Made by a program: the position numbers and the translations under genes | The notes under the pieces: generated by a model | Databases searched by the model: none | Told to the model about the DNA's origin: nothing | What the model saw: the letters and a program-made list of their open reading frames with translations, nothing else | In this document: one piece after another, positions 29,780 through 51,067 of the stretch | Numbering within the stretch: the first letter of the stretch is position 1 | Layout: every line of letters begins with the position of its first letter | Source of the DNA: Thalia democratica | Taxonomy: Eukaryota | Assembly (NCBI GenBank): GCA_965202585.1 | Contig: OZ241833.1 | Coordinates: forward strand, 34,348,001-34,412,000 | Reading direction: 5' to 3' | Length of the DNA: 64,000 nucleotides

Positions 29780-32700
29780 TCAATCTTGCAGGTACCTCGG
29801 CTTGACGTCCTTCCACTTTCCCTTCAGGTTCTCCACGTTCACCTTGATATCCTTCTTCTTCTCCTTCTTTTTGTCTTCCTCCTTCACTGCCACCTTCCTG
29901 CGCTTCTTGCGCTTCTTCTTGTCTTCCTCTTTGACCTTGGGCTTCTTGGAAGTGCCCGCTTCTGCTTGTTCTTCTTCTTCGACGCTCTTCGACTGCTGCG
30001 TCCCGGTCAGGCTGGCCTCTTTGAGCGCCGCTTTCTCTTCCCGGTCCAAAAGGTCTTCCCCCGCATCGACAAACTCTTCCCTGCTCCCGTCTTCTCCTTC
30101 CGGCCGGACCATGCCCGCCTGCACCGCGTACTCGTTCAGGCTGTCGAAGGGAGGAACGACGTCGGAGCTGCGGTCCGAAACTCCGAAGCTGATCTTGTGG
30201 TCGATTTTTGTTTTTTCGTCTTTCCGCTCCGCTTCGCGCTCGAAAGTCACTTTAGACTCTTTCGGCGCCTCGATTTTTTCGTTGTGATCAGAAGAAAGTT
30301 CAGGGACTTTTGCTTTCGTTTTGCGCTTTTGCTTTTTGACCTTTGACTTTTTGCTGTCGTCAGACTTCAAACTTTTCTTGCTGTCCTTCAAAACCTTGTC
30401 TCTACTTCCACCGACTTCTTGGTTTTCGTCAGAACGATTATAAGAGTTTCGATCTTTTAAAGAATTCTCAGCCGGATCGTTCACCAAACTGGGAGGCTGG
30501 TTTTCGACTACTGCAGTTTTCTGCATCTTTGCATTTTTAGTTTTTAGCCTTTTGCTGTCTTCGGACTTCAAGCTTTTCTTGCTATCCTTTAAAACCTTGT
30601 CTTTACTTCCAATGACTTTTTGATTTTTGTCTGAGCTTTGTTGAGAGATTTGATCTTCATTTTGATCGTTAACCAAGCTGGGAAGCTGGTCATCGTTTGC
30701 AACTGCTTTCTGCTTCTTTGTCCTTTTGACTGTTTTCTTTTTAAGCTTGTTTTTGCTCCCTTCATCTTGCAGCGTCTTCCTGCTGCTTCCTGCCTGCTCC
30801 TTAAGGTCGTCCACAGAAAATTTTTCTTTATTTTCAATAACTTTTTTGATCTTTTTCCAACCCGAATCGTTGTTCTCGACATTTTTACTCTTTGCGGGAA
30901 TCTTCTTTATCCTCTTAGTGCGTTTTTTGCCTGTTTTCTTGTTATCGCTGACGGTAGATGCCAAAACGCTACCGTTTTCCTTTAAGTTCGAGATTTCTTT
31001 TGATCGTTTTGACTTGATACTTTTCAATGAGTTTTCATTCAAGCTGTTTTCTTTGCCATCACTTTCATCACTCCACTCGACAGCTTCGTTTTCATTCTCT
31101 GCTATGTTTTCCAAAGAGGCAGGCTTTTTTGCTTTTTTTCGTTTCCTCCTTCTACCCTTTTTCACCCCTTTTTTACGCTTAAAAGCGTTCCTGATCTTGG
31201 CGATGGAAACTATTTTCGACGGGTTTGATATAATCTTCGAGGCTTTGAGGAATATTTTTGAAGAGTTTGAGATCAACTTTGAAGGGTTTGAGAACAGCTT
31301 GGAAGGGTCGGAAGCAACTTTTGAGGGTTTGGAATTTATTCTTGAAGGAACGTTTGTTATAATCGAAGGAACGTTTGTCATTTTTGAAGGAATGTTTGTT
31401 ATTTTCGAGGGACTCAACATTATCTTGGACGGATCGTATATCATCGTGGAAGGGTTGAAGTAGAGCTTTGAAGCGTCGAAAACCCCCAACTCCCCAAAGT
31501 TGCTCGCGGAAACGGGAAACTCCCCAATGGGACCGTCCTCGCCCATCAGCGTGCAGATCTTCTGCCGCTTCGTCTCCGTGATGACGTTGGTGATGACGAT
31601 GACGCTCGATGACTCTTCGGTGACCCCCAGCGGTTGAGAGTTCAGGGACTTCTCACTCACAGTAGGGGGTTTTTCTACTGACTTTTCTTTTTCAGGAGCG
31701 TTTTCTTTCGCCGCCTCCTTGTTCTTCTTCACCCTCTTCTTGACCTTTTTCGTCTTCCTGACCTGCCTCTTCCTTCGCGGGATGGCAGGGTTGACCAGCA
31801 GCTCTGCTGGCGGTCTGTCTTTCTTCACCAGCCGCCTGAACTTCCTCGTCCTCCTCACCAGTCTCCTCCGTTTCTCCTCCAGGGAAATCCCCACTTCATC
31901 GGGGAAGGATTCGCCACTGGAGGTCGTCGAGAGAGACTCCTCGTCCTCTTCAGCTTTGGCCAGCAAGGAGAACTGGCTTCCGAGCATTTCTCTCAGCCCG
32001 GCCATGGCGTCAAAGTGCTCGCTCGACTCGACTTCTTCCGCTACTCGGCGCTCTTCTTCCACCGAGTGTGCCGAAGATTTGTTCTGAACGCTGTTTTTGA
32101 CGTCCGAAAGAGCTTCTAAAAGTGTCTTTTTTACTTTTTCTTCAACTACGTCTTGAACGGTGTCCGACATTGCGTCGTTTAGAATATTTTCGACGACCTC
32201 TCCAACATTATCCATAGGCTCTCTGAGTCCGGCCATCACTGAAAATTCGTTTTCTGATTCCGTGCTGCTTTCTAACATCTCGTAGTCGCTGTCACTCTCA
32301 GCTGTGCCAAAGTTTTTAGGGTTTCCCAGTTTAGAATTTTCATCATTCCTAAGGTCTGAAAGAGCATCTAAAAGCGTGTTTTTGACTTTTTCTTCAGCAA
32401 TATCCTGTTCCGTGTCGGACAGAGCATCATTAAGAATCTTGCTAACAACGTCACTGACATTGTCTTTTGGTTCCCTGAGACCAGCCATCACAGAAAACTC
32501 ATTATCTGATTCTTCACTGCTTTCTAACATTTCGTAGTCGCTATCATTTTCTGTCGTTCCAAAATTTTTAGGGTTTCTCAGTTTTGCATTTTCGTCGTTC
32601 TTAAGGTCTGAAAGAGCGTCTAAAAGCGTATTTTTGACTTTTTCTCCAGCAATATCTTGTTCGGTGTCGGACAGAGCATCATTAAGAATCTTGCCAACAA

Positions 32701-35700
32701 CGTCACTGACATTGTCTTTTGGTTCCCTGAGACCAGCCATCACTGAAAACTCGTTGTCTGATTCTTCACTGCTTTTTAACATTTCGTAGTCGCTACCATT
32801 TTCTGTCGTTCCAAAATTTTTAGGGTTTCTCAATTTTGCATTTTCGTCGTTCTTAAGGTCTGAAAGAGCGTCTAAAAGCGTATTTTTGACTTTTTCTCCA
32901 GCAATATCTTGTTCCGTGTCCGACAGAGCATCATTAAGAATCTTGCCAACAACGCCACTGACATTGTCTTTTGGTTCCCTGAGACCAGCCATCACGGAAA
33001 ATTCATTATCTGATTCTTCACTACTGTCTAACATTTCGTAGTCGCTACCATTTTCTGTCGTTCCAAAATTTTTAGGGTTTCTCAATTTTGCATTTTCGTC
33101 GTTCTTAAGGTCTGAAAGAGCGTCTAAAAGCGTATTTTTGACTTTTTCTCCAGCAATATCTTGTTCCGTGTCGGACAGAGCATCATTAAGAATCTTGCCA
33201 ACAACGTCACTGACATTGTCTTTTGGTTCCCTGAGACCAGCCATCACTGAAAACTCATTATCTGATATTTCACTGCTTTCTAACATTTCGTAGTTGCTGT
33301 CACTCTCAGCTGTGCCAAAGTTTTTAGGGTTTCTCAGTTTAGCATTTTCGTCGTTCTTAAGGTCTGAAAGAGCGTCTAAAAGCGTATTTTTGACTTTTTC
33401 TCCAGCAATATCTTGTTCCGTGTCCGACAGAGCATCATTAAGAATCTTGCCAACAACGTCACTGACATTGTCTTTTGGTTCCCTGAGACCAGCCATCACT
33501 GAAAACTCGTTATCTGATTCTTCACTACTTTCTAACATTTCGCACTCGCTTTGATTCGTGGTCAGCTTAAAGTTTTTGGGACCTTTGAAAGTTATTCAAA
33601 TAAAAATTTCAACACAAAAAAAGTTGTTAAAGACTTATGCTTAAGAACAAAAGTTTTATGTAATAAAAACCAATGCAGCAAAAACCTTCGATCACTTCGT
33701 CTTCCAAGTCGGTAATTTCCAGTTCCTCCACACTTTTCACGGGTTGCCCGCCAGGTGGCACCCTGGCCACTGTTAATATCCCGCTCAGTTTTGTTTGAGG
33801 GTCTTCCCCTTCGTTGTTGGTTTCAGTGAGCTCGTACTGCTTGTCGAAGACGCAGGCAATTTCTCCTTTTTCACCACTTGGTGGCGGGATTGAAAGCTGG
33901 CTTCTCGCGAAGCTGAGGTCGCTTGTTGAGTCTGTTGGTATGAGGTTCGGTTTGATAGGTTCAGTTTTTTACTCTATAATTAATTTTATTTGACGTTTTA
34001 GATAAATTTTTAAAACTTTTGATAATAAAACAGAGTTGTTAATGAAGTTTATTGGATAAATATGGAAACTGATAAATCTTCATGATAACTATAAAAAGCA
34101 TTCAGTTTTAACTTGTTGTGCAAAACTCACTCAACACGATATTTTCAGGCAAGGCCCTGGCAACAGTCAGGACTCCGTTTGCAGAAGTTTCAGGACTTTC
34201 TCCGTTGTCGTCAGTTTCAGTAACTTCGGTTGTGTCGTCATAAACACCAACAATTTTTCCCGCGTTTCCATTGGGAAAGTTCAATCGACTTTGCGAAAAA
34301 CTGATGCTGTCTGTCGAACTTGTATCGCTTTTTAAGCTTCCATTTTCAGGTAATGCCCTAGCAACAGTCAGGACTCCGTTTGCAGAAGTTTCCGGATTTT
34401 CTTTGTTGTCGTCAGTTTCAGTTACTTCGGTTGTGTCGTCATAAACACCAACAATTTTTCCCGCGTTTCCACTGGGAAAGTTCAACTGACTTTTTGCTAT
34501 ACTTACATTGCTCGTCGAACCTAATAAAAAGTATTTTGTTTATCACTTATTTTTTTTATTTTGATATTATTACTTATAATAATATTAAAATACAAAAGCA
34601 TACCTTCTAGACTTTCTTGAGTTTCTATGCTGGCTTTTGATGCTGTTAGTTAAAAAATAAAGTTGTTAGTTTTAAGTAAACATTAAAATTTCACTAAAGT
34701 ATTTTTTAGGTAGCAGTTAATGTTCAATTTAAGTTATTCGTAATGTTTAAGTGCTAAAGTAGTACTTATTGCTTTTAAATCATTGTTTTAAATTTTTTAA
34801 ATATCTATTAATTAATTTTTTTTTTAAAATTTAAATAACTGATTTTTCAGTTACTTTCTAAACTCAAAAGTTTATTTTTATTAATTTGTTTAAAAAAATA
34901 ACTGTGACTTAAAAGCACTTAAGTAAAATAAGAATACTACAACAATGAATAGAACTTAAATATTAACCTCAAATGGTAAGAGCATTTTAAAGCAAAAACG
35001 TAACAACCAAAATTTTTATTAAATAATTTTTTGAAGACATCATTAACAATCCACTTTTTAAAAAGCCAGTAAAAGTACTACACAAAACAAACTTTTCGCG
35101 GATTTTCCGCCAGGTGGCACCCTGGCCACTGTTAACATTCCGCTCAGTTTTGTTTGAGGGTCTTCCCCTTCGTTGTTGGTTTCAGTGAGCTCGTACTGCT
35201 TGTCGAAGACGCAGGCAATTTCTCCTTTTTCACCACTTGGTGGCGGGATTGAAAGTTGGCTTCTCGTGAAGCTAAGGTCGCTCGTTGAGTCTGATCACAT
35301 AAAAATAAATAAACAAAATTTGAAGGTATATATATCTTAATTTTTTAGTTTTTTAACCTATTTTTTTTGAATGCGTATAAGAGATTATTTTAGGGTTAAA
35401 AAACTGCTGCCCGCGGGCAAAATGCGACCCGCTAAACGAAAAATTCTAGCTCACAAAGTGCTTATTAGCTAAAAAATAATTCTCCGAGAAAAAAAATATC
35501 AACGATGAGAATTTTTGTAATAAATTTATGAAAACATAATTTTTTTGCTCGTGAAAAAACTGTTATGACTATTACGTCTTTAACTTATTAAACATTTAAT
35601 GCCGTATATATATATTTTTTAATTATAATTGATCGAATACTTTAAAACTCCCAAAAAAAACCTTCAGCGTATCTGGCATGATATAGGCAACCCCTATAAA

Positions 35701-38700
35701 AGAAAAACCAACTTTTGTAACATTAGCTAAAATAGAACTTTAAGTTTTAACTTGTTGTTTTTTAACTCACTCAAGACGATATTTTCAGGCAAGGCCCTGG
35801 CAACAGTCAGGACTCCGTTTGCAGAAGTTTCCGGATTTTCTCCGTTGTCGTCAGTTTCAGTAACTTCAGTTGTGTCGTCATAAACACCAATAATTTTTCC
35901 CGCGTTTCCACTGGGAAAGTTCAATCGACTTTGCGAAAAACAGATGCTGTCTGTCGAGCCTGACAAAAAAGTCGTTTATGATATAAAGAACCGTATAAAG
36001 TTTCAACAAAGTAGAAAAACGGAATATCACTTTTTTAGATTTGAAAGTAAAGTATGATATTTATATTCATAAATAAACTTCTTCTTGGGTAGTTTGTTCA
36101 TAATGAAAAGCAAAAAAATTAAATCAACCTCGCCCTACAAAAATTACTATTCTGTTTGAAAAACTTTGGATATTAAAAATATCAAATTAGCTACGTATCT
36201 AATTTAACCACATAAAGTTTTTCTCGAGAATAACAAAATAAAATTGTGCAAAGTTGTTTGGTTAGCTTTGGGTTTCATCGAAAATCCTAAAGAATACAGA
36301 TACGAAGCTTGTATTTCTGTCTAAACAGTCAAAAATATAATCTGCATTTTAAAAATAGATTTTTTAGTAAAACTTGCTGGAAATACGGCTAAACTATCTA
36401 TACAGGTCACAAATATGTTATAGTAGTTATACTTTAAAATAAAAAAGGTAAGTTATTTCCAAGTCTTCAAGTTTTAAATTTGATGTTAAAATAAGTTTTT
36501 TATTCAGTTTTATTTTAAAGATTCACATTTAAGTTTCACCCGGTTTTAACCTAAAATTTTCACAACATTATATTTTTCAAGTAATTAAAAAACATATTTT
36601 AGATAGTTTAACAAAATGTAAATTCTATAACAACCAATACAAACAAAGCATAGTTACAAGGTAGTCTAAAAAAAGTTTAACAAAAAGTACTAAACAACAA
36701 AGTTTTTAAAGCTATGGGTTATTAACTATTTATTTTACTTAAAAATTTTTTTTTTGTCTAACAATGAATTAGATAATATAAAATAATAAATGAACAAAAC
36801 AGCTAGTTACAGTAGTTTACAAAACAGGCAATATTTGCATGTATAGAAAATTCTATTAATATATAGTCTAACTACTTACTTGTATCGCTTTTTAAGCTTC
36901 CATTTTCTGTTTCAGGTAACGCCCTAGCAACAGACAGGACTCCGTTTGCAGAAGTTTCTGGATTTTCTCCGTTGTCGTCAGTTTCAGTTACTTCGGTTGT
37001 GTCGTCATAAACACCAACAATTTTTCCCGCGTTTCCGCTGGGAAAGTTCAACTGACTTTTTGCGATACTAACATTGCTCGTCGAGCCTGATAAAAAACAA
37101 ATAGTCATAAAAAATACACATTAACTTAATTAAGATAACACAAACAAATACCTTCTACACTTTCTTGAGGTATTACGCTCAACAATGTGTGGTAGCCTGT
37201 GAAATAAATAAATGATAAAATAAAAAATCACAATAGTATTGAAGTGAATTTTTAAAATATATTAGTTAACAGCACACTGTTTCAAAAGAACAGTTTCGGT
37301 TGTAGTTTAAAATTTGTTCCCAAAACAGATGTTACAACACTATTTTCTTTATTATATTAAAGTATCCACGTAAACTATTTTTAAAAACGTATTTTAAATT
37401 TTAACTTAGTTTTCCATATCAAACAAGAATTACGAAAAGCTTGAAAAATGTACAAAGTTGGCTGCGAACTTTAAAAAAAATTAAATACTGCAAGTTATAA
37501 AACTACAAGTTTCCAGCACTAACTCGGTTTGTTTTGGTTGCTTGGCAACTTCCTGATAACGGTGTGGGCTCCGTCGCAGTAAAATTCAGGGTTTTCCCCG
37601 TCATCATCTGTTTCCATGTAGACGGTTTGCTTGTCGACGACCCCGACTATCTTGCCCGCGTTCCCCTTTTGAAAGTTGAGCTGGGACTTGAGGATGTAGA
37701 TCCCCTCGACGTCTTCTATTGAATCTATGAGGCTCCCGAGGCCACCTGGTGGTTAATTTTAAAGTAAGAACTGCACTTGAATCAAAACCTTTTTAAATAC
37801 AAGCTTTAAAATTAAAACTATCACAACAGGTTGAAGCTAAAAATATAGCACAACTGACTGATGACACGTTCAACTGGTGTTTCTTCTCGTATGGTTTCCA
37901 ACGGAGCCCTGGCAACGTTCAAAACTCCGTGGATTGTTCCCACTTCGGGGTTTTCACCGTTTTCGTCGGTTTCGGTATTTTCGATGGTCTTGTCGTAAAC
38001 ACCCATAATATTTCCTTCCTTGCCTTTCGGAATTTCGAGGTTGCTTCTATTGATACTAGTGTTGCTTGTCGAACCTTTAAATTATTTTTATAATCTATTT
38101 AAAACAATTATAAGAGCCAAAACTTTTTTTGTAAATGATGAAATTTTGAAAAAAGCTGTCAAGAGCAAGTCTAAATTAAATTGAAAAAACACAAACTAAA
38201 ATGCAAGTTTGTTTATTCTTTTACAAGATTTTTTGCAAGGACAAATATGTTTAGAAAAGTAATGAGTAAGTTGTCATCAATAAAAGGCATAAAAACCTTC
38301 AATACTTGGTTTACTTTCCGATTGTACTGGCTTTTTTTCTTCTTCTTTTTCTGTCAAAAAAAAAAATTAACAGTTAAGATGAAGAACTAAGTTTACTGAC
38401 TTATCACTTGGTAAGTTAGGTTACTTTTTCATTAAAAATGTGAAGTAAAACTTTTGAAATATCAAGTACTATATGTTTTGATTTTTAGAAAACAAACAAA
38501 GAGATCTCAGCTACTAGAGGAGAAATAATGTATTTATTTTTTCAAGACTTTGTTATCCAAGCTAAGAACTGACGAGGTCTTTGACCAAAACTTGGGTGCA
38601 CGACAATTCAAATTCGGACAATTCAAATTCCGACAATTCAAATTCTTAAAAAAAAATTAAAGCAGCCACAAATAAAAATGTAATGTTTATTTGTCAAATA

Positions 38701-41700
38701 TAAAAAAACAAATATTTAGGTCATATTAATATCTACAAGCCATTTTTTTCATTTTTGTAAAACATTAAATATATTTTGAGATATGGATTAAATAAAGTAA
38801 AAATCATAATTATTTTTAGTAATTTTAAAATATCTTGAAAAGTATGCTACGTTTTAAAAAAAAGAAAAAAGTGGCTTGTAGATATTAATAAGATCTACAT
38901 ATGTATTTTTTATTTTTTTCAAACTTATATTGCTTATTGAGATATAGTCTTTTAAATATTTTTTTAAGAATTTGAATTGTCGGAATTTGAGTTGTCCGAA
39001 TTTGAATTGTCATGTAACCCCAAAACTTAGTTTGCATAGTAAAGTCTTGAAAGAATAAATAAATATCCAGTATGGTAAAAACTGTGCAAGTGTTTAGCAA
39101 TATAAATGTAGTTTAACATACTAATTTACTATTTAATGAAAATATCAAAAACAAGTAGACTACCTTGAACCTTTGGATCAATTATAGAATTTTCAGGTGT
39201 TTTGTTTTCTGTTAATAAATTGTTTTATATTAGATGATAAGTTAGAAATATAGTTTATCTTGAATTTAATTTTTTTTTAATCTTATACATATTGTATTTT
39301 GATAAATAAAAAAACTAGTAATTACAAAAAAAAAAAACATAATATATAGCCGTTATACTGTAAAGTAAAAAGTCAAACTTTTGCTGTTTGGTATATAACC
39401 AACTTAATTGTTTATTAAGTAAAAGAAAAAATTTAAGGTAACTTTTTGCTTGATTTATTACTATTACAAGTTGAATTACACTTTTTTATAAAAAAGTACA
39501 ATTTATTAGAAGTCTATACTCTTGGGTCAACAAAGATTATTAACTACCTTAGATATTTGTTTTAGTCGGCTTTTTTTTCTAATTTTTATATTTATAATTT
39601 TTTATATTTGTGCTGATTTTTTTTCTTAACTGAGCCAACATATAACCATTAAGCTCTAAAAGTCTAAACCTTCTAAATAAACTTTTTATGTTGCAAAAAT
39701 TCTATACAAACATTTTTAATTCTAGGCCAAGAAAAACCAAGTGAAACGTTTATTTTTTATCGCAAAACGGTTTAAATATCTCAATAACAATTACAAGCAA
39801 AATCAAACCTTTATTACTGACAACTTCTTTCCTAGCATCTACAACCTCCTTCCTCGGGAAGAAATCGGCCATGTTGATCACGATGTTCTGTACGTTGTTG
39901 GTGACCGTTCCATTTCCCCCTCCCTGCTGGTTGTTCAGCTGATCCAGCTTGATCATGCGAGGGACCCCGTTCTCGTCCGGTATGCTGATCATGATGTGCT
40001 GCTCGTTGTTCGTGCTCGGGGGATTCACCGTCTGTTTCGGAACGCCTAATACGTTATTTTGCGGGTTTTTCTCCGAATCGCGCCTTTCTTTTGCTGGCTC
40101 CGCGACTGAGGTCTGGCTCTCGTCCGAACTGCTTGATGCGTCGAAGAAAAACTGGTTTCGGCTGAGTTCAAGCTTTTTCGGTTCAAAGTCGAAACCTCCT
40201 TTGGATACGGGCTTGCCCAGAGGGTTTAAACTGTTTTCCAGTTTCAGGAAAAATGAATGTTCAGACTTGACAGGCCTGCCGAGCTGTGGGGTTAAACCTA
40301 TTTCAGGTTCTGATTTGTTAGCTGAATTAAGCTTAACTTCTGATGCTACTACTAATTTTAGGTCTGGTACTGATTTCAATACATTTTCAGGTTCCGGATC
40401 AGGCTCTACAACTTTTAGCGGTTTCTGTATTGGCTCTGGTTCAACAACTGTTTCAGGTTCTGGCTCAGGTTGTGATTCAGGTTGTGGCTCAGGGTCTGGC
40501 TCAGGTACCGGTTCAAGTTCTGGCTCAGTTACCGGTTCAGGCTCAGGTTCTGGTTCAGGTTCTGGTTCAGGTTCCGGTTGTGGCTCAGGTTCTGGTTCGG
40601 GTTCTGGTTCAGGTTGTGGCTCAGGTTGTGGCTCAGATTCTGGTTCAGGTTCCGGTTCAGGTTGTGGCTCAGGTTCTGGTTCGGGTTCTGGTTCAGGTTC
40701 TGGCTCAGGTTCTGGTTCAGGTTCTGGCTCAGGTTCTGGTTCAGGTTCTGGTTCAGGTACAGGTTCAGGTACAGGTTCAGGTTCAGGCTCTACTTCCACT
40801 ACTGTCTCTTTTCTCGATTCCTCGACCGGCTCCACTCTGGCTGTTTCCTGCTTCGCCTGCCTACCACCAAAAAAGTCGGCCATGTTGATTGCAATGTTCT
40901 GCATGTTGTTCACAGTCGAGGGTAACCCCCCTTGACCCTGCTGCTCGTTCAGCTGGTTCACCCGCATCATGGTCGGCGCCCCATCGTTGCCGGGCATGCT
41001 GATCGAGAAGTTCTGCTCGTTCCTCGTCTTCACTGCTTCGACAGGTTCTACCACTTTTTCAGGTTCTCTACAAACCAGCACTTCGGGTTCTGGTTTAATA
41101 ACTGGTTCTAAACTTACAACCGGGTCATCAACTACAACTTCTTCAAGCTCCGGCACTGAAACTACCTCCGATTTCGCTTCTTCAACTGTTTCAGGCTCTA
41201 CTTCTACTTGCACAACTGTGTCTGGTTTCACTTTTTTTACAGATTCTTTTTTCTCAACATTTTTGCACTCCACAGCTTCGCTCGGCTTGGGCTCGTTTTT
41301 TTCCAAACTTTTCGGCTCGACTTTCACCACTGTCTCTTTCCTCGCTTCCTCGACAGCCTGCGCCTTTGTCGCTGCCTCCGGCTTCGTTTCGCTTGAGTTT
41401 GCCTGCCTGCCACCAAAAAAGTCGGCCATGTTGATTGCAATGTTCTGGATGTTGTTCACAGTCGAGGGTAACCCCCCTTGACCCTGCTGCGCGTTCAGCT
41501 GGTTCACCCGCATCATGGTCGGCGCCCCGTCGTTGCCGGGCATGCTGATCGAGAAGTTCTGCTCATTCCTCGTCTTCACTGCTTCGACCGGCTGCACCTT
41601 GTTCGACCTGAAGTAGGAGAACAGGCTCTTGCGCGACTTTTGCGCGGGAACGACGTCCTTTATGGACTTTTTCGAAACTGCCAGCGACGGCGCGCTTTTC

Positions 41701-44700
41701 TTGTTCAAGTTCTCGCTTGCAACTGGAGCGGTGGCGAGCGCAAAGTCGTCGTTTTGAGTTGCGATTTCATTGGTGAGCGAAGACTCTTCGACCTGGTTCT
41801 TTTGCGGCTCTTCGCCGCGCTTTTCATACGTCGGAACATCTGCAGGCAGCATTTGCTGTTTGCTGCTGAAGAAATCCACGAGGCTTTCCTGCTTGCTGTC
41901 ACCCGCGTGGGGGTTTGTGTACCTGTAATTAAATTTTCTTGGTTGCGGGAATTACAAAAATAAGAAGTTAACATTCTAGCATAAAAAAAATATGTTGGAA
42001 AAAAATTTGACTAAACTTAAGGAAGTTTTAATTAAAGAATGCCTAAATTTTGTTCTACCAAATAAAATAACAAACTTTAAATTTTTATAGGGTTTTGTTT
42101 AATTTTAAGTACTTCAAAACCTCCTCAAAATCTTCACAGTCTTTAAGAAAATGTAAATTTAAAAGTAATGTATCTTTTCGACACGAAAAACATCTTTAAT
42201 TTAAATGAAACAACTCCGAATAACGTATAACAAGCCTAACAAAGATAATAAAAAAGTCATTACCACAGTGAGTACTCTGCCAGTTCATCGCCCACTTTGT
42301 TGTGCTTCTTCATGCAGAGCGGGAATGGGCAGCAGAACAAGCAGCAGACCATGCAGCACCCCCACAAGGTGGCCATCAAGAATATGAACATTATGAAGCC
42401 CAGTCCCCCCAGTGCGTCCGCTGTGGTGAGCAATTCAGGTAATTTGATGAATAAACAAACATAGTTCAAGTAATTGTTTTTGTTTTCAAAGTTTTTTCTT
42501 GTACTTCTTTTTATCTTGGTGCAAAAAGATTAGACAAGCTTTGATTAACCATTTTTGTATTAATTCATTCTCATATTAATTTATCATTCTATTTTAACTA
42601 AGATTATTTTTATTATACTTCTAATAATGTACTCTTTCTTTTTGTTAAAACATTGTTCGACTTATTTTTGTTCGTAAAAGTAGACTAGGTGGGAAATAAA
42701 AATCTAAAGATAGTTGTAAATATTAAGTTTGAAATTAAAAATCGGTATTTACTATTTTTATTTGCAGTTTGTTGTGGTAAAACAACTAACCTGACAAAGC
42801 GCCGACTTCAGGTTTACAGTTTCCACCTTGAGCAGCTGAAAAGTTATTTTGCTTACAAAACATGTTTCTATTTATCAAATATTAATATAAACAAAACAAC
42901 TTTTTCAGTTTAAATAATTTAGTTCATAACAATTTCTTAAAATCTATGCAAATTTACTAGAATTCATTTTAGTTTTGGAAAGTAAGTGAAAAACAAATGC
43001 TAAAATAAACTTAGTATTTTAATATTAAAACGATTGTTGCTACGAAAAAACCTCGAAAATCATTACAAAAAATAAAAATTTAGATTTAAAACTTTATTTA
43101 CTTCTGTTTGAAAATAAAAAAAATTTCTCTAGCCTAAAGAATATGCTTGTGTCTTAAAAAGTTGTATGTTTAATGCATTTTTATCAACATGAGAATTTAA
43201 AGTTTAGTAAACATATTTAAGTTTCATATTTGAAAAAACTGTTTAGTAGATGACTTAAGCTATATTTTATTGCTATATAAAAAAGCAATCAATTTTAGTG
43301 TTCAAAAATTTAGTTACCACTACATAAAACATTGAGTCTTAACTTGAAGCAGTTTTCAATAATCTAAATTAAAAAAAAAAATATTACCAGGGTTGGGCCA
43401 AGTTATGAGAGGTACAGTTTCGTTGAGGAACGATTTAGTAGTGCCACATTGGTAAACTTCATTGGTGAACTTGTATGATGGGTTGAACATCTTTACCTCC
43501 TCTGTATTATCAAGTATAAATTAACTTTTGTTTTTGCTTCAGGAATAAGTTGCAATAGGTTGTTTTTTCTTTAGTAACACTTTTTTGTCTCAATATTAAT
43601 TTACATAAGCTCAAGTCTGTCAGTCTTAAGCTTGACAAGAGTAAAGTTAAAACAAAGTTTTAATTTGTATAACTAGCAAGGTATTAATATTTTATTTTCA
43701 TTTGTTTTAAATTATCTTGACATTTTAAATGTTTAAAAACTTTTCAAAATATAGTTTTCTAGTTTTTCAAATCGTGTTTGGAACTATTTTGTAGACGAAA
43801 AACTTATTAAGAGCATAATATCATAACTCTAGCCTCTGAAACTTTTTTCAAATTCTTTTCTGAACACAAGAGTAAGGGATTGAGATCCTCTATCTACTGA
43901 TACTGACTGCACTTCCACTAAATACAAGTCTTCCAGTTTTTCTTTGCATTCTTTAAAATGAAAACAATTTACTACTAAGTAAATAGTTTTATGAAAACTT
44001 AATTTTAGTTATAACATAGTAAATAAAAAAATAAAAAACATATTTGATAAAATAAGATTACAATGCATTATTTTTCATGTAAAGTTTTTTTTCTTTTTAG
44101 TAAACAATCGTTGTAAAAGTAGCTTGTTTAAAGTTTAAGTTCTACTGAATTTTTTTCAATCAGAAATACTAAAATATGTTTCTAACTTTTGTCTTTTTTT
44201 AAAGCTTTTGTGTCTTTTTACAGCTGCCAAAATACTTTCAGATATAAAACAAAGCTTTTTACTAATGTCCGTTAAAACTTATAAGAACGTATAACTTTTA
44301 AACAGTCAAAGCATACTGCTAGAAAACTGCTAAAATTATTAAAAATAAATTTAATAAGCGAACTCTTAAGCCATTCTATTTATTTAATTAAGTAGAAGTC
44401 ACAGAAGTCTTTAAAACACCACTCTCTCAAAGCTGTACAGTTGAAATACATATTACTTGCTCGAGTTGTTTTTAAACTAAAATTCATGACCAACCATACA
44501 GGACGGACACTTCATCAAATGAGAGCCGAATCCCCCTTAGTTTTTCGTTCACCTCAACTTTCTTGAACTGGTCTCCGCAGCTGCCGTCGTAAATGCCACT
44601 TGCTGTGTCTGTTTTTCACCAAATATAAACATCTGATAAATTACATTTTATTACATTTTTTCTTTACTTGAAAGTACAACTTTTAGATCCAAAAAATATG

Positions 44701-47700
44701 TACAATAGTTGCATTTTACGTGAGAATTATTAAAATTTAAGCAGTATTTTTTTACGTGATTAAAACAATTTACTAGCAAATGCTGGTGAAGTAAATGTAC
44801 TTCACTTCAGACAAGCAAACTAACAGTTTTACTGTTTTGTAGGCAAGTAAACAACCAACTGTACACACATGTGTTCAGTTTACTAACAAATGGGTAAGTG
44901 TACATATTTGTAGTTTACTAATAAATGAGTAAGTGTACATATTTGTAGTTTACTAACGTATGAGTAAGTGTACATATTTGTAGTTTACTAACAAATATGT
45001 ACATATTTGTAATTTACTAACAAATGAGTAAATGTACATATTTGTAACTTACTAACAAATGAGTAAATGTACATATTTGTAACTTACTAACAAATAGATA
45101 AAAGTACATATTTGTTGTTTACTAACAAATGAGTAAATGTACATATTTGTAGTTTACTAACAAATAGATAAGTGTACATATTTTTAGTTTACTAACAAAT
45201 GCTGTTGAAGTATCCCTTCAGCCCGATGGCGAAACCCCCGTCTCCGGGTCCCACCGTGCGGAAGTGAATGTTCAGCTTGCCGTCGGTTGATACCACCCTC
45301 TGTTGCCCCTCCAGCCTACCTCCGTACTTTCCCAACAACACGTTGTTCGAGTACACCTTCGAATGATGATTTTTAAACTACAAACACAAGCAATAATATT
45401 GTTTCGTAGAATTCCAAGCAATAATGATGGTTTGTAAGCTATGAATACTCAAATAAGACTTTGTGAGCGTTGTCCTAACTTAAAAGTTATAAGTTATTAA
45501 ATAATTATTTGACATTAGATAAATATTTAGACAAACAATTTAGTTATTAACAGCAGTTGAATAACTATCATGATATAAAAAACATAAAAAATAATTTCAA
45601 CTATAGATTTACTCTAATTTAAATAGTTTTATAAGTATAAAAAAGAACTACACTAATCATAATCTTTATGACATTCAGTTTAGTAAATTAAAACGTAAGT
45701 ACTTGATTACCAAGGATCTTTATAAACTTTAAATAACCAATACATTTTGTTAAAACTTTATGAAGCATCATTAACAGTCGAAATATTAAAAACCTCATTA
45801 ATTTAAAACTTTTAAACACTTAGACAATTTTTACCCTAGGTATTAGAACTAAAATTATAAAAAGTATGATTTTTTTAAACAGGGGTTCTCTTACCACAAT
45901 TAGAGTGTCGAAATTTAAAACAACACAACAAACAATAAACAAAATCCAAAATATATAAAAAAGAAAGATAAATTTTACAATTAAAATCTGATTATAACAA
46001 TCGTCTTTTAAAATTTACGATTTTTTCAAAATTAAGCTTGTTCTAGTACAAATCTAAGTCTACTTAAAAGTTTATCAAAAAAAAAAAACGGACTAAAAAA
46101 TATTTCCAATCGTAACTTAGTCAAAACCAACCAGCATCTCGTCGCAGTCCCTCAGCTTCCCCTCCTCGATGACCAGCTCCACCTGGTTGCCCGCCGTCGT
46201 GCACAGGTTGTACTCGCACTCCAGGTAGTCCCCGTAGAACTGCGGGTAGTTGGGCGTCTGGAACACTTGCTTCTGCGTTGGGGCCACGGCGTCGAAGCCG
46301 CACACTTTCGCCTCGTCCGAGGTCCTGTTGAGCGCCTCGTCGCTCACCGAGGTGTACATGCCCTTGAAGCCGACCTTGGCGAAAATTTTGTCGGTGACGA
46401 ACTTCACGGTGATTTCCCGTCCCAAGGAAATGAACACCCTGGGCCTGCCCACGTCGCCGGCGATGACTCCCAGCAGCTTGCCGTTCGAAGAGATCTAAAA
46501 GTAGGTGCAAGTATTGAATAACAAAGAAGTTATACATAAAATCAAGGACTGCTTACAACAAACAACATAAAAATTGAAAATAAAAAGAAACAACAGTGAG
46601 AGCAAACAATAATCGAAAAAATTGTTAGAAATTTAAAATAAAATTAAAACCTCCATGCGGTCGCAGCAGCACTCCGAAGTGCCGTCCAAGACGGTGAAGT
46701 TGACCTTCATGCCCTCCTCCGCCGTGAACACCCACTCCCCGTACATGTCCGACGGGTACTTCTCCGGGTAGTTCGGGGTGGTGAACTCCGAGATGTAGTC
46801 GGTCGCCACAGCCTCGAACCCGAATCGCTTCTTGGTGCTGACGTTGTCGAAGAAGGTGGGCACCGGAGTGGTTTCCTGTGGTTTTTCCTGGGGTTCATCT
46901 CGAGGTGGTGGATTTGGGCTGTTTCCCGATGAAGACCCAAAGTTGTTTGAACTCCCAAAGCTGTTACTGCCGTAATTACTGTTGCCATAGCTGCCGCCAT
47001 AAATACTGCTGCCGCCGTAGTAAGAGTTGTAGTAAGAATTGTAGTAAGAGTTTAAATAGCTCGGCGAGTAGAAGCTGGAGCTGCCATAGCCGTACGGGGA
47101 ATACCCGTAGCCAAAACTGAGACTCGGGCTGTAGGTACTTCCGAACGAGCTGCTTCCGCCGTAAGTGTTCCCGTAGCTGTTCTGCGTGTTAATGTAGGTG
47201 TTCGACGCGCTGTTTTGAGTACTCTGCTGGTTGTTTTGCACGTTGCTAGCCGAGTTCTGATTGTTCGACGAACCGCTGCTGGAGGTTGAGCCTCCGTTTA
47301 CCGACCAGCCGTCGGTAGACCAGCCGCTGTCGGAGCTACTGTCGTCGTCTTTCGCGTTGTCATTGTTACTACTAACATCATTGTTGTTGGTCTGAACGTT
47401 GTTATTGTTGGTTTGAACGTTGCTTGATGATATATACGTTGGTTGACTGTTTCCGCTGCTAATATATATTGTGCTTCCATAAGAAGGAAACGACGAAAAG
47501 TCGTACGTGTAGTAGCTCCGGTAGCTCGGCTTCAGGCTGTAGTAGCCGGTGAACCCGCTGTAGACCCCGTTCTGATCCGACTTGAACCTCACGATGAGCT
47601 CGTTGCCGTCGCTCTCGAACCTCTTGGGCGTCCTGATCGATCCCGATATCTCCTCCTTTATGCACCCGTCGCTGATCACCTCCAGCTTGTCGCAGCACTC

Positions 47701-50700
47701 CTCGCTCTCCCCGCTCACCACCGTCAGCTTGATCCTCCTGCCCGCCGGCGCCACCAGCTTCCACTGGCAGCTCAGACCGTTCTGGTAGCTGTCCGGGTAG
47801 CCGGGCGTCTCGAACGTCGTCGGCTTGTCGCCGACCGGCAGCACCTGGTCGCACGGCGACTTTATGTGGTACGCGCCCTTGTAGTAGCCGCTCCTGCCCA
47901 GGCTCGGCTCGCTCGCGTACCTGACCACCAGCGTCCCGTCCGAGGAGCCGTACGTCTTCTTGTTCGCCGCGTCCGTGATGGTTCCCGACACGAGCTTGTT
48001 GGCCGAGTAGGCCTGCAGCAGCTCGCAGCAGTCGTCAGAGTCTTCGGCTTCCACGTCCAGCGCGACCTGAAACCCCGGCGGGGCCGTCAGCGTCCATTTG
48101 CACGCGGTGACCCTGGAAGTGTTGGACCAGCACTCGGGCATGAGAAAGTCCTGCGGCTGGTAAGTCGCCTGCGCCTCGAACCCGCACTCCCCGTCGAAAT
48201 TCTTGACCTCGGGGCGGCTCAGCACTTTGGGCTTTACGACGTAGGAGAAACGGAAGCCGACGTCCTGGTTGTGGTGATCGGTGGTGAACTTTACGGCCAG
48301 GGAGTTCCCCGTCGACGTGAACAGCATCGGGCTCTGCACCTTGCCCGACGTCTTTCCCAACGATCCGTTCCCGGAAAACACTTCGACGAAATCGCAGCAG
48401 GCCTCGGAGCCGCCGCTGATGATCGAAAAGTAAACCTGCTCGTCGTTCTCGCTGATGAACTTCCACGTGAAGCTTTCCGAGGGCGCGTAGCTGTGCGGGT
48501 AGCCCGGCGTGCTGAAAAAGCGAACTGTTTCGGTGACCTGAAAGGTGCGCTGCGCGACGAACTCGCAGGCGTCGTGGTAGTACGCCAGAAAGCCTTTGAA
48601 CTGCCGCGTGCCATCGGAAAAGAACTTCAGGGACAGGAAGCCGCCGGTCGACGTGTAACTTTTCCTCTTGACGGAATTCCCCGACTCCACACCGACCAGG
48701 ATGTCGTTGCTCAAAACTTCTACGAGGTCGCAGCACGCCTCGGTTTCGATTTCGACGAAAACCAGCTCGACCTCGCAACTGCTGGACCTCGAACGAATGT
48801 TCCAGGTGTAGTAGGCGTGGCCGGGGTACTCTCCGGGGTAGTTCGGTGACAGCAGGTTGATGTAGTCGTCGGTGGAGTAGAGGTCGATCGTTTCAGCGTC
48901 CGTTTCGTCTTCGTCCGTATCGTCGGACGGAACGTCGACGTACGACCTGTTCTGCACGCTGTACAGCCCTACGTAGCCCGGGCTGGTCACGCCCTCCGGC
49001 GAGCTGAACAGGACCTTCAAGCTTCCGTTCGTCGACGAAAACGTCCGCGGGCTGTCGACGGAGCCGGAAACGTTGGCGATCAGCTCGTCGCCAGAGTACA
49101 CTTCCACGCAGCACGAGTCCGATTGGCCGCTGGACAGGGTGAACTCGACCTGCTGGCCGGCGGGGGCGACAAGGTCGTAGCGGGAGGTCGAGCTGAAGGG
49201 GCACTCGTAGGGGTAGCCGGGGGAGGAGATGGTCATGGTGCGCGAGTAGGCGGGCAGGACGGAGGCGTCCAGCTCCGAGTCGATCTGGTAGTAGCCGTGG
49301 AAGCCCTTCATCTCGGTTTCCTCGTCGGCGTAGAACTTGATGACCAGCATTCCGTTGAGCGAGGCGAACGTTTTCTGCTCCGTCAAGTTTCCCGACACCT
49401 CGTAGAACAGGCTGCCGTTCACCCATATTTTCAGGTAGTCAACTTCCGGCTCGGTTTTTCCGGACACCAAATACAATTTCACCTGCTTGCCCTCGGGCGC
49501 GTATATCTTCCACTCACAGTAGGCGTACGGCGGGTAACTTTCCGGGTAGTTGGGGGTTGAGAGGGTCTTGGCAGCGTACCTCGCCTCGGCGAACCTGATG
49601 CACGTTTCCACTTTGTTGTTTTCGCTTTCTTCGTCCTTCAAGAGGTCGTCCGTGGCCACCTTGTACTGCGCGTAGATGCCCTCGAACTCCAGCGCTGAGT
49701 CGGAGTAGAAGTGAAGGTCTAGAATCCCGTTGGTGGACACGAAGCTCTTGGGCGCGGTTACCTGGCCCGAAACGGTCCCGATCAAAACATCGTTGGACCT
49801 GATTTCCAGTTTGTCGCAGCAAGCTTCCGTCTGTCCGTGCAATACCAGGAAGTGCACCTGCTTTCCCTGCGGAGCCCGTATCTGGCACTCGAAAGACGTC
49901 TTCTTGCCGTAGTTTAGTGGAAATCCCGGCGTGGTGAAGTTCTGCTCCTCCTCCGTAGCGGTCAACATGAAGCCGTCGGAGCTGGTGTCCAGCTGAAAGT
50001 AGCCGTGGAAGCCCGGGTACTCCCGCACGTAGTCGGACCTGAAGTAGACGTCCAGCCTGCCGTCTACGGATTTGAACTCGCGCGGGTTCACCAGCAGCCC
50101 GGAAACTTCCCCCAACTTGGTCTTGTTGCTGTACACCTCCAGCTTGTCGCAGCACTCTTCGCTTCTACCGCCCACCACCACCAGCTTCACCTGCTGATCC
50201 GGGTCCCGCGCCTTCAACACCCACGTTGCCGTCAGGAAGCTCTCGTACGACCGGGGGTAGCCGGGCGTGCTCCAGGTGGTGGAAAACTCGACCACTTTGG
50301 GGGAGAACTTGACGGTCGGGCCCAGAGTCGTGGTTTCTTCCGTCGTCGTGGTCGTGGTGGTCTTTTTTGTCGTGGTGGTCGTGGTGGGCTTTGTCGTGGT
50401 CGTCGTGGTCGTCGTCGTGGGCGTTGTCGTGGTTGTTGTGGTGGTTGTGGTCGTGGTTGTGGTCGTGGTTATCAACTGGTACTCGTAGTAGCCCGTGAAA
50501 CCTTTAAAACGAAAAAGAGGTTAGTATGTTTTGAAAAATTACAAAAACTACTAAAGAATCACTTGTTAAGTATATTACAAATAAAAATAAACATTCACAG
50601 CTGACTTTAAAAAGTTGTCATAAAAACATTCAGTACTATTCAAAACCAGCCAAAAAACCTGAAAAATGCAGCAAATAATCCGTTTCGAACGTGATCCTCA

Positions 50701-51067
50701 AGCCTTGCCCGGTGCCGCTCCGGTACGTGACCGCCTTCTCCACCACCCCCGACAGCGGCTCAAACTTCCTGGCGCCGTCGTACACGGTCAAAATGTCGCA
50801 GCACTCCTCGCTCCTGCCCTCCGTTATCACCAGCTGCACCCGCTCGCCGGGAATCCCCGGTATGGTCCACTCGCACTTGGCGAACGACGGGTACTCCCCG
50901 GGGTAGTTGGGCGTCGCGAACGTGTTGTTGCCCTCGCCGAGCTCCAGCGTCCCGCAGTCGTACTCTTGCGCCGGCTCCTGGCGCCTGACCCGCTTGTGCA
51001 CGGTGAGGCTCGAACCGGGTTGGAGCGTCAGTAGAAAAATGATCAGACAAAGTTCCCTAGAAAGCAT
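29780..51067 (-). CDS. Giant type I membrane protein: signal peptide, 11 CUB domains, TM, ~2,600-aa repetitive cytoplasmic tail (~4,329 aa, 20 exons)
   Basis: Phase-compatible exons: 51067-50659, 50501-46651, 46494-46132, 45356-45197, 44608-44495, 43950-43843, 43501-43388, 42420-42264, 41922-39809, 39208-39164, 38074-37859, 37745-37524, 37196-37152, 37086-36880, 35959-35771, 35290-35093, 34642-34604, 34520-34131, 33931-33686, 33582-29780. Sum is 12,990 nt with no internal stop. CUB halves join correctly across introns (CDEML|VYSNN; CCDRME|ISSNG). Weakest links: the acceptor at 44609 and the donor at 43842. Confidence 0.72.
31205..31465 (-). repeat. 7-aa periodic repeat (xxNPSK-type), ~12 units
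   Basis: [84 protein letters not shown]. Confidence 0.85.
32100..33538 (-). repeat. 252-bp (84-aa) coding tandem repeat, 5 near-identical units plus 1 diverged
   Basis: ML(E/D/K)SS codons at 33538, 33286, 33034, 32782, 32530, 32278 (exact 252-nt spacing). Confidence 0.97.
33686..38074 (-). repeat. Eight copies of an unrecognised ~55-aa domain on phase-1 symmetric exons
   Basis: Consensus S.(I/F)..SQL.(F/I)P.G..G.I.GV(Y/F)D.......ET(D/N)..GE.P....GVLTVAR.P in exons starting 38074, 37745, 37086, 35959, 35290, 34520 (two copies) and 33931. Confidence 0.85.
35391..35696 (-). mobile_element. hAT-type MITE related to 11778-12109
   Basis: TAGGG.../...CCCCTA ends; ctgcccgcgggcaaaatgcgacccgct is the reverse complement of the 12040-12100-type subterminal motif. 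Confidence 0.6.
38594..39019. mobile_element. Mutator (MULE)/Foldback-type non-autonomous element in an intron
   Basis: ~60-bp TIRs each with three GACAATTCAAATTC units; perfect 9-bp TSD CCAAAACTT (38585-38593, 39020-39028). Confidence 0.9.
40430..40790 (-). repeat. (Glu-Pro)n dipeptide hexanucleotide microsatellite in coding exon
   Basis: GAACC(A/T)/GAGCCA runs giving EPEPEP... with Q/V/S variants. Confidence 0.95.
42264..42420 (-). other. Transmembrane exon with Cys-rich cytoplasmic boundary
   Basis: [34 protein letters not shown] followed by MKKHNK (positive-inside). Confidence 0.85.
44878..45200. repeat. 35-bp intronic minisatellite (9 units plus a partial one) abutting the CUB11 exon donor
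   Basis: Unit gtttactaacaaatgagtaagtgtacatatttgta starts at 44878, 44913, 44948, 44983, 45012, 45047, 45082, 45117, 45152, 45187 (one unit is 29 nt). Confidence 0.95.
45197..51067 (-). other. Ectodomain part: signal peptide, furin site (KRVRR), 11 CUB domains
   Basis: [20 protein letters not shown] signal; 11 units of (S/T)P(N/G)YP..Y....C.W.I.AP.G..V.L......E.CCD.L.V...G...F.S....GF.G.Y. Confidence 0.93.
50335..50472 (-). repeat. Poly-Thr mucin-like linker between CUB1 and CUB2
   Basis: ACN codon run encoding ~45 aa, almost all Thr. Confidence 0.9.

Follow-up and report, generated by a model that had tools for sequence, protein, structure and literature searches.

A probable single gene for a type I membrane protein that pairs eleven CUB domains with a repeat-built cytoplasmic tail of some 2,600 residues

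Five large open reading frames (ORFs) on the minus strand of the window, the whole 64,000-nucleotide stretch of Thalia democratica DNA analysed here, raise the question of whether a CUB-domain receptor and the long repeat-built coding region downstream of it belong to one gene or to two. The exon structure was rebuilt by independent exon chaining, by dynamic programming over GT..AG sites and open frames, with scores from a log-odds model of codons that was trained on the large ORFs versus introns. The best parse was a minus-strand chain running from the ATG at 51067 to the stop at 29780, with a length of 12,936 nt and a product of 4,311 aa (Table 1), which probably represents a single gene whose product is a ~4,300-aa type I membrane protein composed of a CUB ectodomain, a transmembrane (TM) segment and a ~2,600-aa tail. 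An earlier note on this DNA had proposed a single coding sequence of 12,990 nt; one chain with compatible phases was indeed obtained, but with a shorter length, the 54-nt gap between the two models tracing to a handful of very small phase-1/phase-1 exons that are optional and in part doubtful. All five large ORF exons (exons 1 to 3, the first tail exon and the last exon) were recovered by our own parse, as were the three junctions of the earlier model at 45197/44608, 42264/41922 and 33686/33582. ORFs of 733, 1,271 and 1,295 codons are present in a genome whose introns are ~25% GC, and their lengths are therefore far beyond chance. Exon 38644-38570, the sequence of which is a 15-bp microsatellite, and the tiny exons 38350-38315 and 35431-35405 were set aside as probably false parser picks.

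Table 1 Features of the minus-strand gene model; phases are given as acceptor/donor
Feature	Position	Strand	Phase	Description
Exon 1	50659..51067	-	donor 1	Start codon, 20-residue signal peptide, most of CUB1
Exon 2	46651..50501	-		CUB1 end, poly-Thr mucin-like linker, CUB2-9, S/N/Y/G-rich linker, CUB10 first half
Poly-Thr mucin-like linker	50469-50341	-		In exon 2, after CUB1
S/N/Y/G-rich low-complexity linker	about 47493-46831	-		In exon 2, ahead of CUB10
Exon 3	46132..46494	-		CUB10 second half and CUB11 first half; Pfam CUB
Exon 4	45197..45356	-	donor 1	CUB11 end, completing the CUB11 motif series; donor GTTAGTAA
Small stalk exon	44495..44608	-	1/1	Between CUB11 and membrane; without ATG
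Candidate stalk exon, weak	43388..43501	-	1/1	Own parse only; low coding score, 9.9
Candidate 45-nt stalk exon, weak	42791..42835	-	1/1	Own parse only; low coding score, 5.4
TM exon	42264..42420	-	1/2	Donor GTAATG; Cys-rich juxtamembrane stretch after TM
First tail exon	39809..41922	-	2/1	704 aa
Seven cassette exons, together	33686..38074	-	1/1	Eight ~60-aa copies of one module; a ninth may be degenerate
Cassette exon	38074-37859	-	1/1	
Cassette exon	37745-37524	-	1/1	
Cassette exon	37086-36880	-	1/1	
Cassette exon	35959-35771	-	1/1	
Cassette exon	35290-35093	-	1/1	
Cassette exon	34520-34131	-	1/1	Double
Cassette exon	33931-33686	-	1/1	
Last exon	29780..33582	-		1,267 aa and stop at 29780

The rebuilt protein begins with a typical signal peptide (hydrophobic, then small residues), and the 1,690 aa that precede the TM segment contain 11 CUB units when the P-x-Y-P and CCD motifs are counted. 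The Pfam CUB model (PF00431) scored 41.8 bits in exon 1, 258 bits in exon 2 (E=7.5e-78, 8 stretches) and 39.6 bits in exon 3, relative to a gathering cut-off of 21.4 bits. Both the single signal peptide and the 11 CUB domains claimed earlier are borne out; the Pfam models CDCP1_CUB_6 and CUB_M02D8_5_3rd also match the protein. CUB10 is split over exons 2 and 3, and CUB11 over exons 3 and 4. Exon 1 shares 92% nucleotide identity with Tara contig L001, compared with 85-86% in the introns, and exon 2 has relatives at 85% (P0001) and 75% (P0002). Intron 2 is exactly absent from a related marine-metagenome contig (L002), confirming the junction 46651/46494. Of 16 differences between haplotypes that fall in the CUB, stalk and TM exons, 15 were synonymous (6/6 in exon 3, 5/6 in exon 4 and 4/4 in the TM exon), and the flanking introns carried many changes as well as indels. 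The small stalk exon 44608-44495 carries one synonymous variant; the ~45 nt just upstream of it have 5 substitutions and a 1-nt insertion, with 1 substitution just downstream. No start codon precedes the coding part of either this stalk exon or the TM exon, and the phase-1 acceptors of both match the phase-1 donor of CUB11.

Hydropathy scanning of the full model found one hydrophobic span, at aa 1691-1713 (42406-42338) and followed by KKHNK, in keeping with the single TM segment that had been claimed. An N-terminal signal peptide, one TM segment and positive residues on the cytoplasmic side together give the arrangement of a type I single-pass protein, and the Cys content is 0.5% in the tail versus 2.4% in the ectodomain. 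The CUB-to-membrane half of the model is well supported.

Downstream of the TM segment the model encodes 2,599 aa of repeat-built sequence, in agreement with the ~2,600 aa of the earlier note. The first tail exon holds three ~55-aa repeats with an 11-residue motif (... NMADFF; NMADFF at 41432, 40886 and 39875), separated by P/E/V/K-rich spacers with a (PE)n run at 40808-40431. The ~60-aa modules of the cassette exons share 14 invariant columns in our alignment (A1), and AlphaFold2 predicts a beta-hairpin for the module with a core pLDDT of 85-92. Cassette exon 34520-34131 is an exact fusion of exons 37086-36880 and 35959-35771, with 373/390 nt identical, and the junction 36880/35959 is thus confirmed, as the duplicated block shows precise intron loss. 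In the last exon, six 84-aa acidic repeats (252 nt x 5.8, 33550-32102) each contain an 11-residue motif, of which there is a degenerate seventh copy, and are followed by seven-residue 'PSK' repeats (31432-31211) and then by polybasic K/R clusters. AlphaFold2 predicts helical pairs for the 84-aa repeats at low confidence. The pN/pS ratio among these repeats is 0.1-0.35, and, judged from its sequence, the tail is real, constrained coding sequence.

The earlier description of the architecture as undescribed is consistent with homology searches. A search of 1.84 billion representative proteins, run with no length filter, gave 0 matches to the first 360 aa of the tail, and searches of the other segments were narrower in scope: the last exon had no homologue in a word-index search that covered proteins 699-2,224 aa long, and the mid-tail exon matched only unrelated low-complexity PE-repeat proteins, which swamped the search. 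Recognition in the ESM Atlas was low for the hairpin exon and the 84-aa repeats (best scores of 0.60 and 0.71), with nothing usable; scans of JGI metagenome DNA had no match for the module profile or for the C-terminal 732 aa, no Pfam model matched the tail, and PDB sequence searches of the tail against solved structures found no similarity and nothing significant. On these searches, the tail appears to have no detectable homologue.

The two halves meet at the junction 42264/41922, and here the single gene has to be weighed against two tandem genes, possibly an operon resolved by spliced-leader (SL) addition, which we consider unlikely. The first of these would encode an 11-CUB type I receptor ending ...AEYSLW at a stop at 42260, with a cytoplasmic tail of about 20 aa, and the second would use the ATG at 41852, behind a trans-splice or promoter-proximal acceptor at 41922, to encode a soluble ~2,550-aa repeat protein, cytoskeletal or nuclear. 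The stop codon directly behind the TM exon fits such an arrangement, and read-through of the intron gives a protein end (AEYSLW and stop, at 42260-42262) that is a plausible short tail with a YxxPhi-like motif; however, any phase-2 GTAA donor is bound to place a stop right behind it, and the one behind 42264 was rejected as evidence of termination. The ATG at 41852, the first in frame in the tail exon, likewise lies in the context CAAATGCT, identical to that of the true start codon. However, the 70 nt from the acceptor to this ATG are open in frame, and the 23 codons score as coding at +28.9 bits in the ORF frame, relative to 10.7 and -2.9 bits in the other frames (shuffle p=0.002). This score equals those of coding windows deeper in the exon, after the ATG, and is unlike that of introns (maximum of -14.3 in 192 windows) or of two real 5' leaders (-19 and -10). 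GC-rich, coding-like sequence begins exactly at the acceptor 41922. As the codons before the ATG score as coding, the first tail exon has the character of an internal coding exon, being coding from its acceptor onwards rather than from an ATG.

Two further features of the tail would suit separate genes. It has several strong NLS-like polybasic clusters, as might be expected of a free protein of the nucleus or cytoskeleton, and its GC3 is about 0.5, compared with 0.8-0.9 in the CUB and TM exons. The GC3 shift was rejected as a discriminator between one gene and two, as the low-complexity parts of the CUB exon are also ~0.6 and the first 600 nt of the tail are at 0.67-0.78. Against two genes, the phases match across the junction, a coincidence with a 1-in-3 chance, and the 341 nt that separate the two exons are typical of introns in this gene, whereas neighbouring genes are >1 kb away. 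The first tail exon requires a phase-2 donor, for which the TM exon, 341 nt upstream and with a good GTAATG site, is the only plausible candidate. Between 44608 and 33686, the TM exon and the first tail exon are individually the sole departures from 1/1 phasing, and only as a pair (phase 1 to 2, then 2 to 1) do they form a 1/1 unit like all of their neighbours. The spacer 42263-41923 contains 0 AATAAA and 3 ATTAAA, versus ~0.7 expected by a rough base-composition estimate; in AT-rich DNA these counts carry no information on one gene or two.

Searches of sequence runs for RNA evidence found matches to the locus only in DNA-type runs of organism A, in a near relative, organism B (29% of words), and in marine metagenomes. 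The examined runs that cover the locus (X1 and X2) are DNA, with uniform depth across introns and a contig that spans intron 42263-41923 unspliced; no contig bridging the TM and tail exons was present among the relatives' contigs. Taken from exon structure and coding signal, the presence of the CUB array, TM segment and tail on one transcript is indirectly supported, and we infer that the CUB-to-tail junction is used in the mRNA. If there were instead two genes, the locus would hold an ordinary CUB receptor adjoining an orphan repeat protein, and would be a useful test case for the annotation of operons and trans-splicing in this genome.

Alternative products of one locus would add to the single-gene reading rather than compete with it, and we regard them as quite improbable. 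In addition to the long form, the locus could yield a truncated secreted product that ends ...NSIC, if transcripts read through the donor at 45197 or are polyadenylated beyond it, and/or a membrane form with a short tail that stops at 42260. The donors at 45197 and 42264 are each followed directly by a stop codon, and a 35-bp minisatellite behind 45197 repeats the donor motif about 10 times; the AT-rich introns, however, give chance stops behind almost any donor. The 1/1 phasing from 44608 to 33686, with the TM and first tail exons as a pair, would also allow the tail to vary in length by skipping of cassette exons, and a joint skip of the TM exon and first tail exon would keep the frame and put the downstream repeats outside the cell. 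The basis for these products is purely structural.

Returning to the single full-length protein, the signal peptide would direct the N-terminal 1,690 aa with their 11 CUB domains to the outside of the cell, followed by a single Cys-rich TM helix, and the splice from 42264 to 41922 would carry the protein into the ~2,600-aa cytoplasmic tail. The tail would then present, in order, three NMADFF motifs with P/E/V/K-rich, spring-like spacers, eight or nine ~60-aa beta-hairpin modules, six 84-aa acidic repeats sharing one 11-residue motif, and a polybasic C-terminal end. The CUB array may bind an extracellular ligand or matrix, and the tail may serve beneath the membrane as a tether or docking platform that is long, multivalent and in part extensible, its length being potentially tunable by exon skipping since the cassette exons are all phase 1/1. 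We put forward, tentatively and as a possibility that falls somewhat short of probable, a lineage-restricted 11-CUB receptor with a palmitoylatable TM segment and an orphan 2,600-aa tail of four new repeat types (NMADFF in a PEVK-like spring, beta-hairpin cassettes, 84-aa acidic repeats showing one motif seven times, and the polybasic end), forming a new matrix-to-cortex tether with a length set by phase-1 cassettes. If the full-length form is real, its cytoplasmic tail would be by far the longest among known CUB receptors and among the longest in single-pass receptors, and the gene would be a clear example of a conserved module outside the cell fused to newly evolved sequence inside it that was generated from repeats. 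The tail's repeated short motifs and its beta-hairpin modules would then be candidate new protein-binding units, and the phase-1 cassettes a simple means to vary the length of the tether.

Among known systems, cubilin and cubilin-like arrays share the tandem CUB arrangement, and cubilin is without a TM segment or cytoplasmic part; the cubilin-like matches retrieved here had no TM segment or tail in their available sequence. The best named match was a Ciona CUB-domain protein (UniRef H2XQR0, P0004) with 26% identity, and an unusual C-C-D motif in the CUB core is common to the protein described here and an unnamed metaclust protein (P0003). CSMD1-3 are very large type I membrane proteins in which 14 CUB domains alternate with sushi domains, followed by a single TM segment and a tail of tens of residues. 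The present protein resembles them in having a long CUB array and a single TM segment, and differs in its mucin-like and S/N/Y/G linkers and its ~2,600-aa tail. No exon matched the Pfam sushi model (PF00084), so the alternation of CUB and sushi typical of CSMD was not found, and the match to a rat CUB/sushi protein had 23% identity and covered 35% of the query, indicating no specific sequence relationship to CSMD. The earlier note had also likened the tail to a titin/AHNAK-like scaffold with a possible adhesion or mechanosensing role. This did not hold as homology, given 0 matches for the first 360 aa of the tail and nothing in Pfam or PDB, and it stands as analogy only: the likeness to titin PEVK and AHNAK is one of composition and organisation, with a P/E/V/K-rich segment containing a (PE)n run and many short predicted beta-hairpin modules, and titin and AHNAK, unlike this protein, are not anchored in the membrane by a TM segment. 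CDCP1, the neuropilins, DCBLD1/2, LRP3/10/12, NETO and C. elegans LEV-10/SOL-1 are also single-pass receptors with CUB ectodomains. Their CUB domains number 1-6 and their tails range from tens of residues to a few hundred; none is known to have a tail built from repeats that runs to thousands of residues. Integrin beta4 and C. elegans MUP-4, MUA-3 and LET-805 offer a functional analogy only, as single-pass matrix receptors with long cytoskeleton-linking tails, and differ from the protein described here in their unrelated ectodomains and much shorter tails (about 200-1,000 aa).

The minus strand between 52500 and 29000 was parsed with an exon-chaining program based on GT..AG sites, open frames and the log-odds of codons relative to intron trinucleotides. 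The window is AT-rich (~23-30% GC outside exons), with exons markedly higher in GC. The top parse was a single chain from an ATG at 51067 to a stop at 29780 (12,936 nt, 4,311 aa), which independently used the identical five large ORFs that the earlier note had joined and recovered all three of its junctions 45197/44608, 42264/41922 and 33686/33582. The exact exon set proposed there held for the large exons and these junctions, while a few tiny phase-1/1 exons differed or are doubtful. Counting of recurring P-x-Y-P and C-C-D motifs gave 11 units, the number of CUB domains claimed, and Pfam placed CUB in exons 1, 2 and 3, with eight stretches in exon 2 (E=7.5e-78). The sole hydrophobic span, aa 1691-1713 in exon 42420-42264, agrees with the single TM described, and the region past it, put at ~2,600 aa, comprises 2,599 aa in the rebuilt model and is rich in E, K, S, V, N and P, with cysteine nearly absent. 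The observation behind the earlier note is confirmed, and its interpretation is partly supported.

Near relatives were found in marine metagenomes only (Tara Oceans PRJEB4352), and the best named match was a Ciona CUB protein. Together with the base composition and the CUB domains, the metagenome distribution suggests a planktonic marine animal, tentatively a pelagic tunicate. One Tara contig, L001, aligned to 51294-46124; its identity is 92% over exons and 85-86% over introns. A second metagenome contig, L002 (70-75% identity), contains intron 1 and lacks intron 2 exactly, reading ...CCCDRME-ISSGGKLLGV... (L002:4078-4083 against window 46495-46650), which confirms junction 46651/46494 and indicates that intron presence varies among close relatives. 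CUB10 is split over exons 2 and 3 and CUB11 over exons 3 and 4, and because each domain is divided in this way, both are whole only if these exons are spliced together. Two DNA sequencing runs with the locus (X1, X2) contain a second haplotype. Its CUB, stalk and TM exons show 16 differences, of which 15 are synonymous, among them all four of the TM exon and the single one of the small exon 44608-44495; substitutions and indels are abundant in the adjoining introns. No start codon precedes the coding content of the stalk exon or of the TM exon, and both acceptors are phase 1, the phase of the donor at 45197. The long open frame antisense to a CUB exon almost certainly arises as a side effect of GC-rich codon usage on the coding strand.

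Most 5' splice sites of the gene begin GTT, with T at +3 (GTTTTT, GTTTTA, GTTGGT, GTTAGT), a donor consensus that is unusual for an animal; they include the donors of intron 2, which its exact absence from L002 confirms, and of intron 1, found at the same position in both relatives. The minisatellite that begins at the donor of exon 45356-45197 repeats the donor motif TTTGTTAGTAA ~10 times within the intron, and these copies may serve as decoys for the 5' splice site; use of any one would introduce a stop codon at once. The hydrophobic end that read-through past donor 39809 would append is probably a mere effect of T-rich intron composition.

Coordinates and content of features of the locus (window positions)
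Feature	Position	Content
GTT donors, examples	50658, 46650, 46131, 45196, 39808	
Antisense open frame (+)	47443-48849	468 codons
Heterozygous region (X1, X2)	41000-46600	sequenced individual highly heterozygous; e.g. 8 differences in ~40 nt, 45394-45430
Minisatellite	44877-45201	35 bp, ~9.5 copies
Cysteine cluster	42320-42360	seven cysteines in TM and residues just behind; dense candidate palmitoylation cluster
Read-through end	39753-39808	19 residues
Doubtful candidate exon	38644-38570	15-bp microsatellite
Tail part 1		three ~55-aa NMADFF-type repeats amid P/E/V/K-rich spacers; (PE)n run
Tail part 2		eight or nine ~60-aa modules
Tail part 3		six 84-aa acidic repeats, 11-residue motif in each; degenerate recurrence further on
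Tail part 4		seven-residue 'PSK' repeats
Tail part 5		polybasic clusters up to C-terminus

Whether one gene or two are present turns on junction 42264/41922. Searches of sequencing runs for the locus found DNA-type runs only; X1 and X2 give even intron coverage, and one contig passes unspliced through 41875-42279. The first tail exon was assessed as first-exon-like or internal-exon-like. GC-rich sequence begins exactly at the acceptor at 41922, 70 nt ahead of the first in-frame ATG (41852), and the 23 intervening codons, scored with a codon model trained on CUB exons only, gave +28.9 bits in the ORF frame, whereas the two alternative frames gave 10.7 and -2.9 (shuffle p 0.002). Coding windows deeper in this exon scored 12-42, 192 intron windows reached at most -14.3, and two real 5' leaders scored -19 and -10. 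Because of this coding-like score ahead of the ATG, translation very probably enters the first tail exon from upstream. The exon requires a phase-2 donor, which only the TM exon can credibly supply: it lies 341 nt upstream and ends at a GTAATG donor. Since GTAA stands in phase 2, a stop codon lies right behind donor 42264, which is neutral between one gene and two. The TM exon (phase 1 to 2) and first tail exon (phase 2 to 1) form a joint phase-1/1 unit, as do all their neighbours. A CUB receptor gene followed by a separate tail gene, which we consider unlikely, would fit the drop in GC3 from 0.8-0.9 to ~0.5 in the tail, although the start of the tail is still at 0.67-0.78, and would also fit the context of ATG 41852 (CAAATGCT), which is that of the true start codon, the strong polybasic, NLS-like clusters in the tail, and the short ...AEYSLW* end as a plausible receptor tail. 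The CUB array, TM and tail are rather likely to belong to one gene, with isoform mixtures taking the small probability left over from the one-gene and two-gene readings.

The tail is genuine coding sequence. Differences among its six 84-aa repeats (252 nt x 5.8) are chiefly synonymous (pN/pS ~0.1-0.35), and the ~60-aa modules have 14 invariant positions in common. Exon 34520-34131 consists of exons 37086-36880 and 35959-35771 fused exactly head to tail (373 of 390 nt identical), a precise intron loss within a duplicated exon block; the fusion confirms the junction predicted at 36880/35959 and, by implication, the splicing of these exons as modelled. AlphaFold2 predicted a long beta-hairpin for the ~60-aa module (mean pLDDT 72, core 85-92) and, from a single sequence and at low confidence (pLDDT 41), helix pairs for the 84-aa repeats. 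Protein database searches returned no match for the last exon among proteins of 699-2,224 aa and PE-repeat noise as the sole matches of a mid tail exon; the first 360 aa of the tail had 0 matches among 1.84 billion representatives, and tail segments matched nothing in ESM Atlas, two JGI scans, Pfam or PDB. Judged by the databases searched, the tail is without detectable relatives. A near relative (organism B) has 29% of the 31-mers from the TM exon and first tail exon taken together, which places the tail in at least the immediate lineage.

In a single protein of this design, the CUB array would bind a ligand or matrix outside the cell, the seven cysteines of the TM and the residues directly behind it could be palmitoylated, and the tail would form a long platform beneath the membrane, multivalent and in part extensible, its length possibly varied through phase-1 cassette exons. 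The suggestion of a titin/AHNAK-like tail did not hold beyond composition, which is all that the tail shares with titin and AHNAK, and Pfam and PDB gave no tail relatives. The closest counterparts are cubilin and multi-CUB type I proteins such as CSMD, CDCP1, neuropilin, LRP12 and LEV-10, whose known tails are all short or absent.
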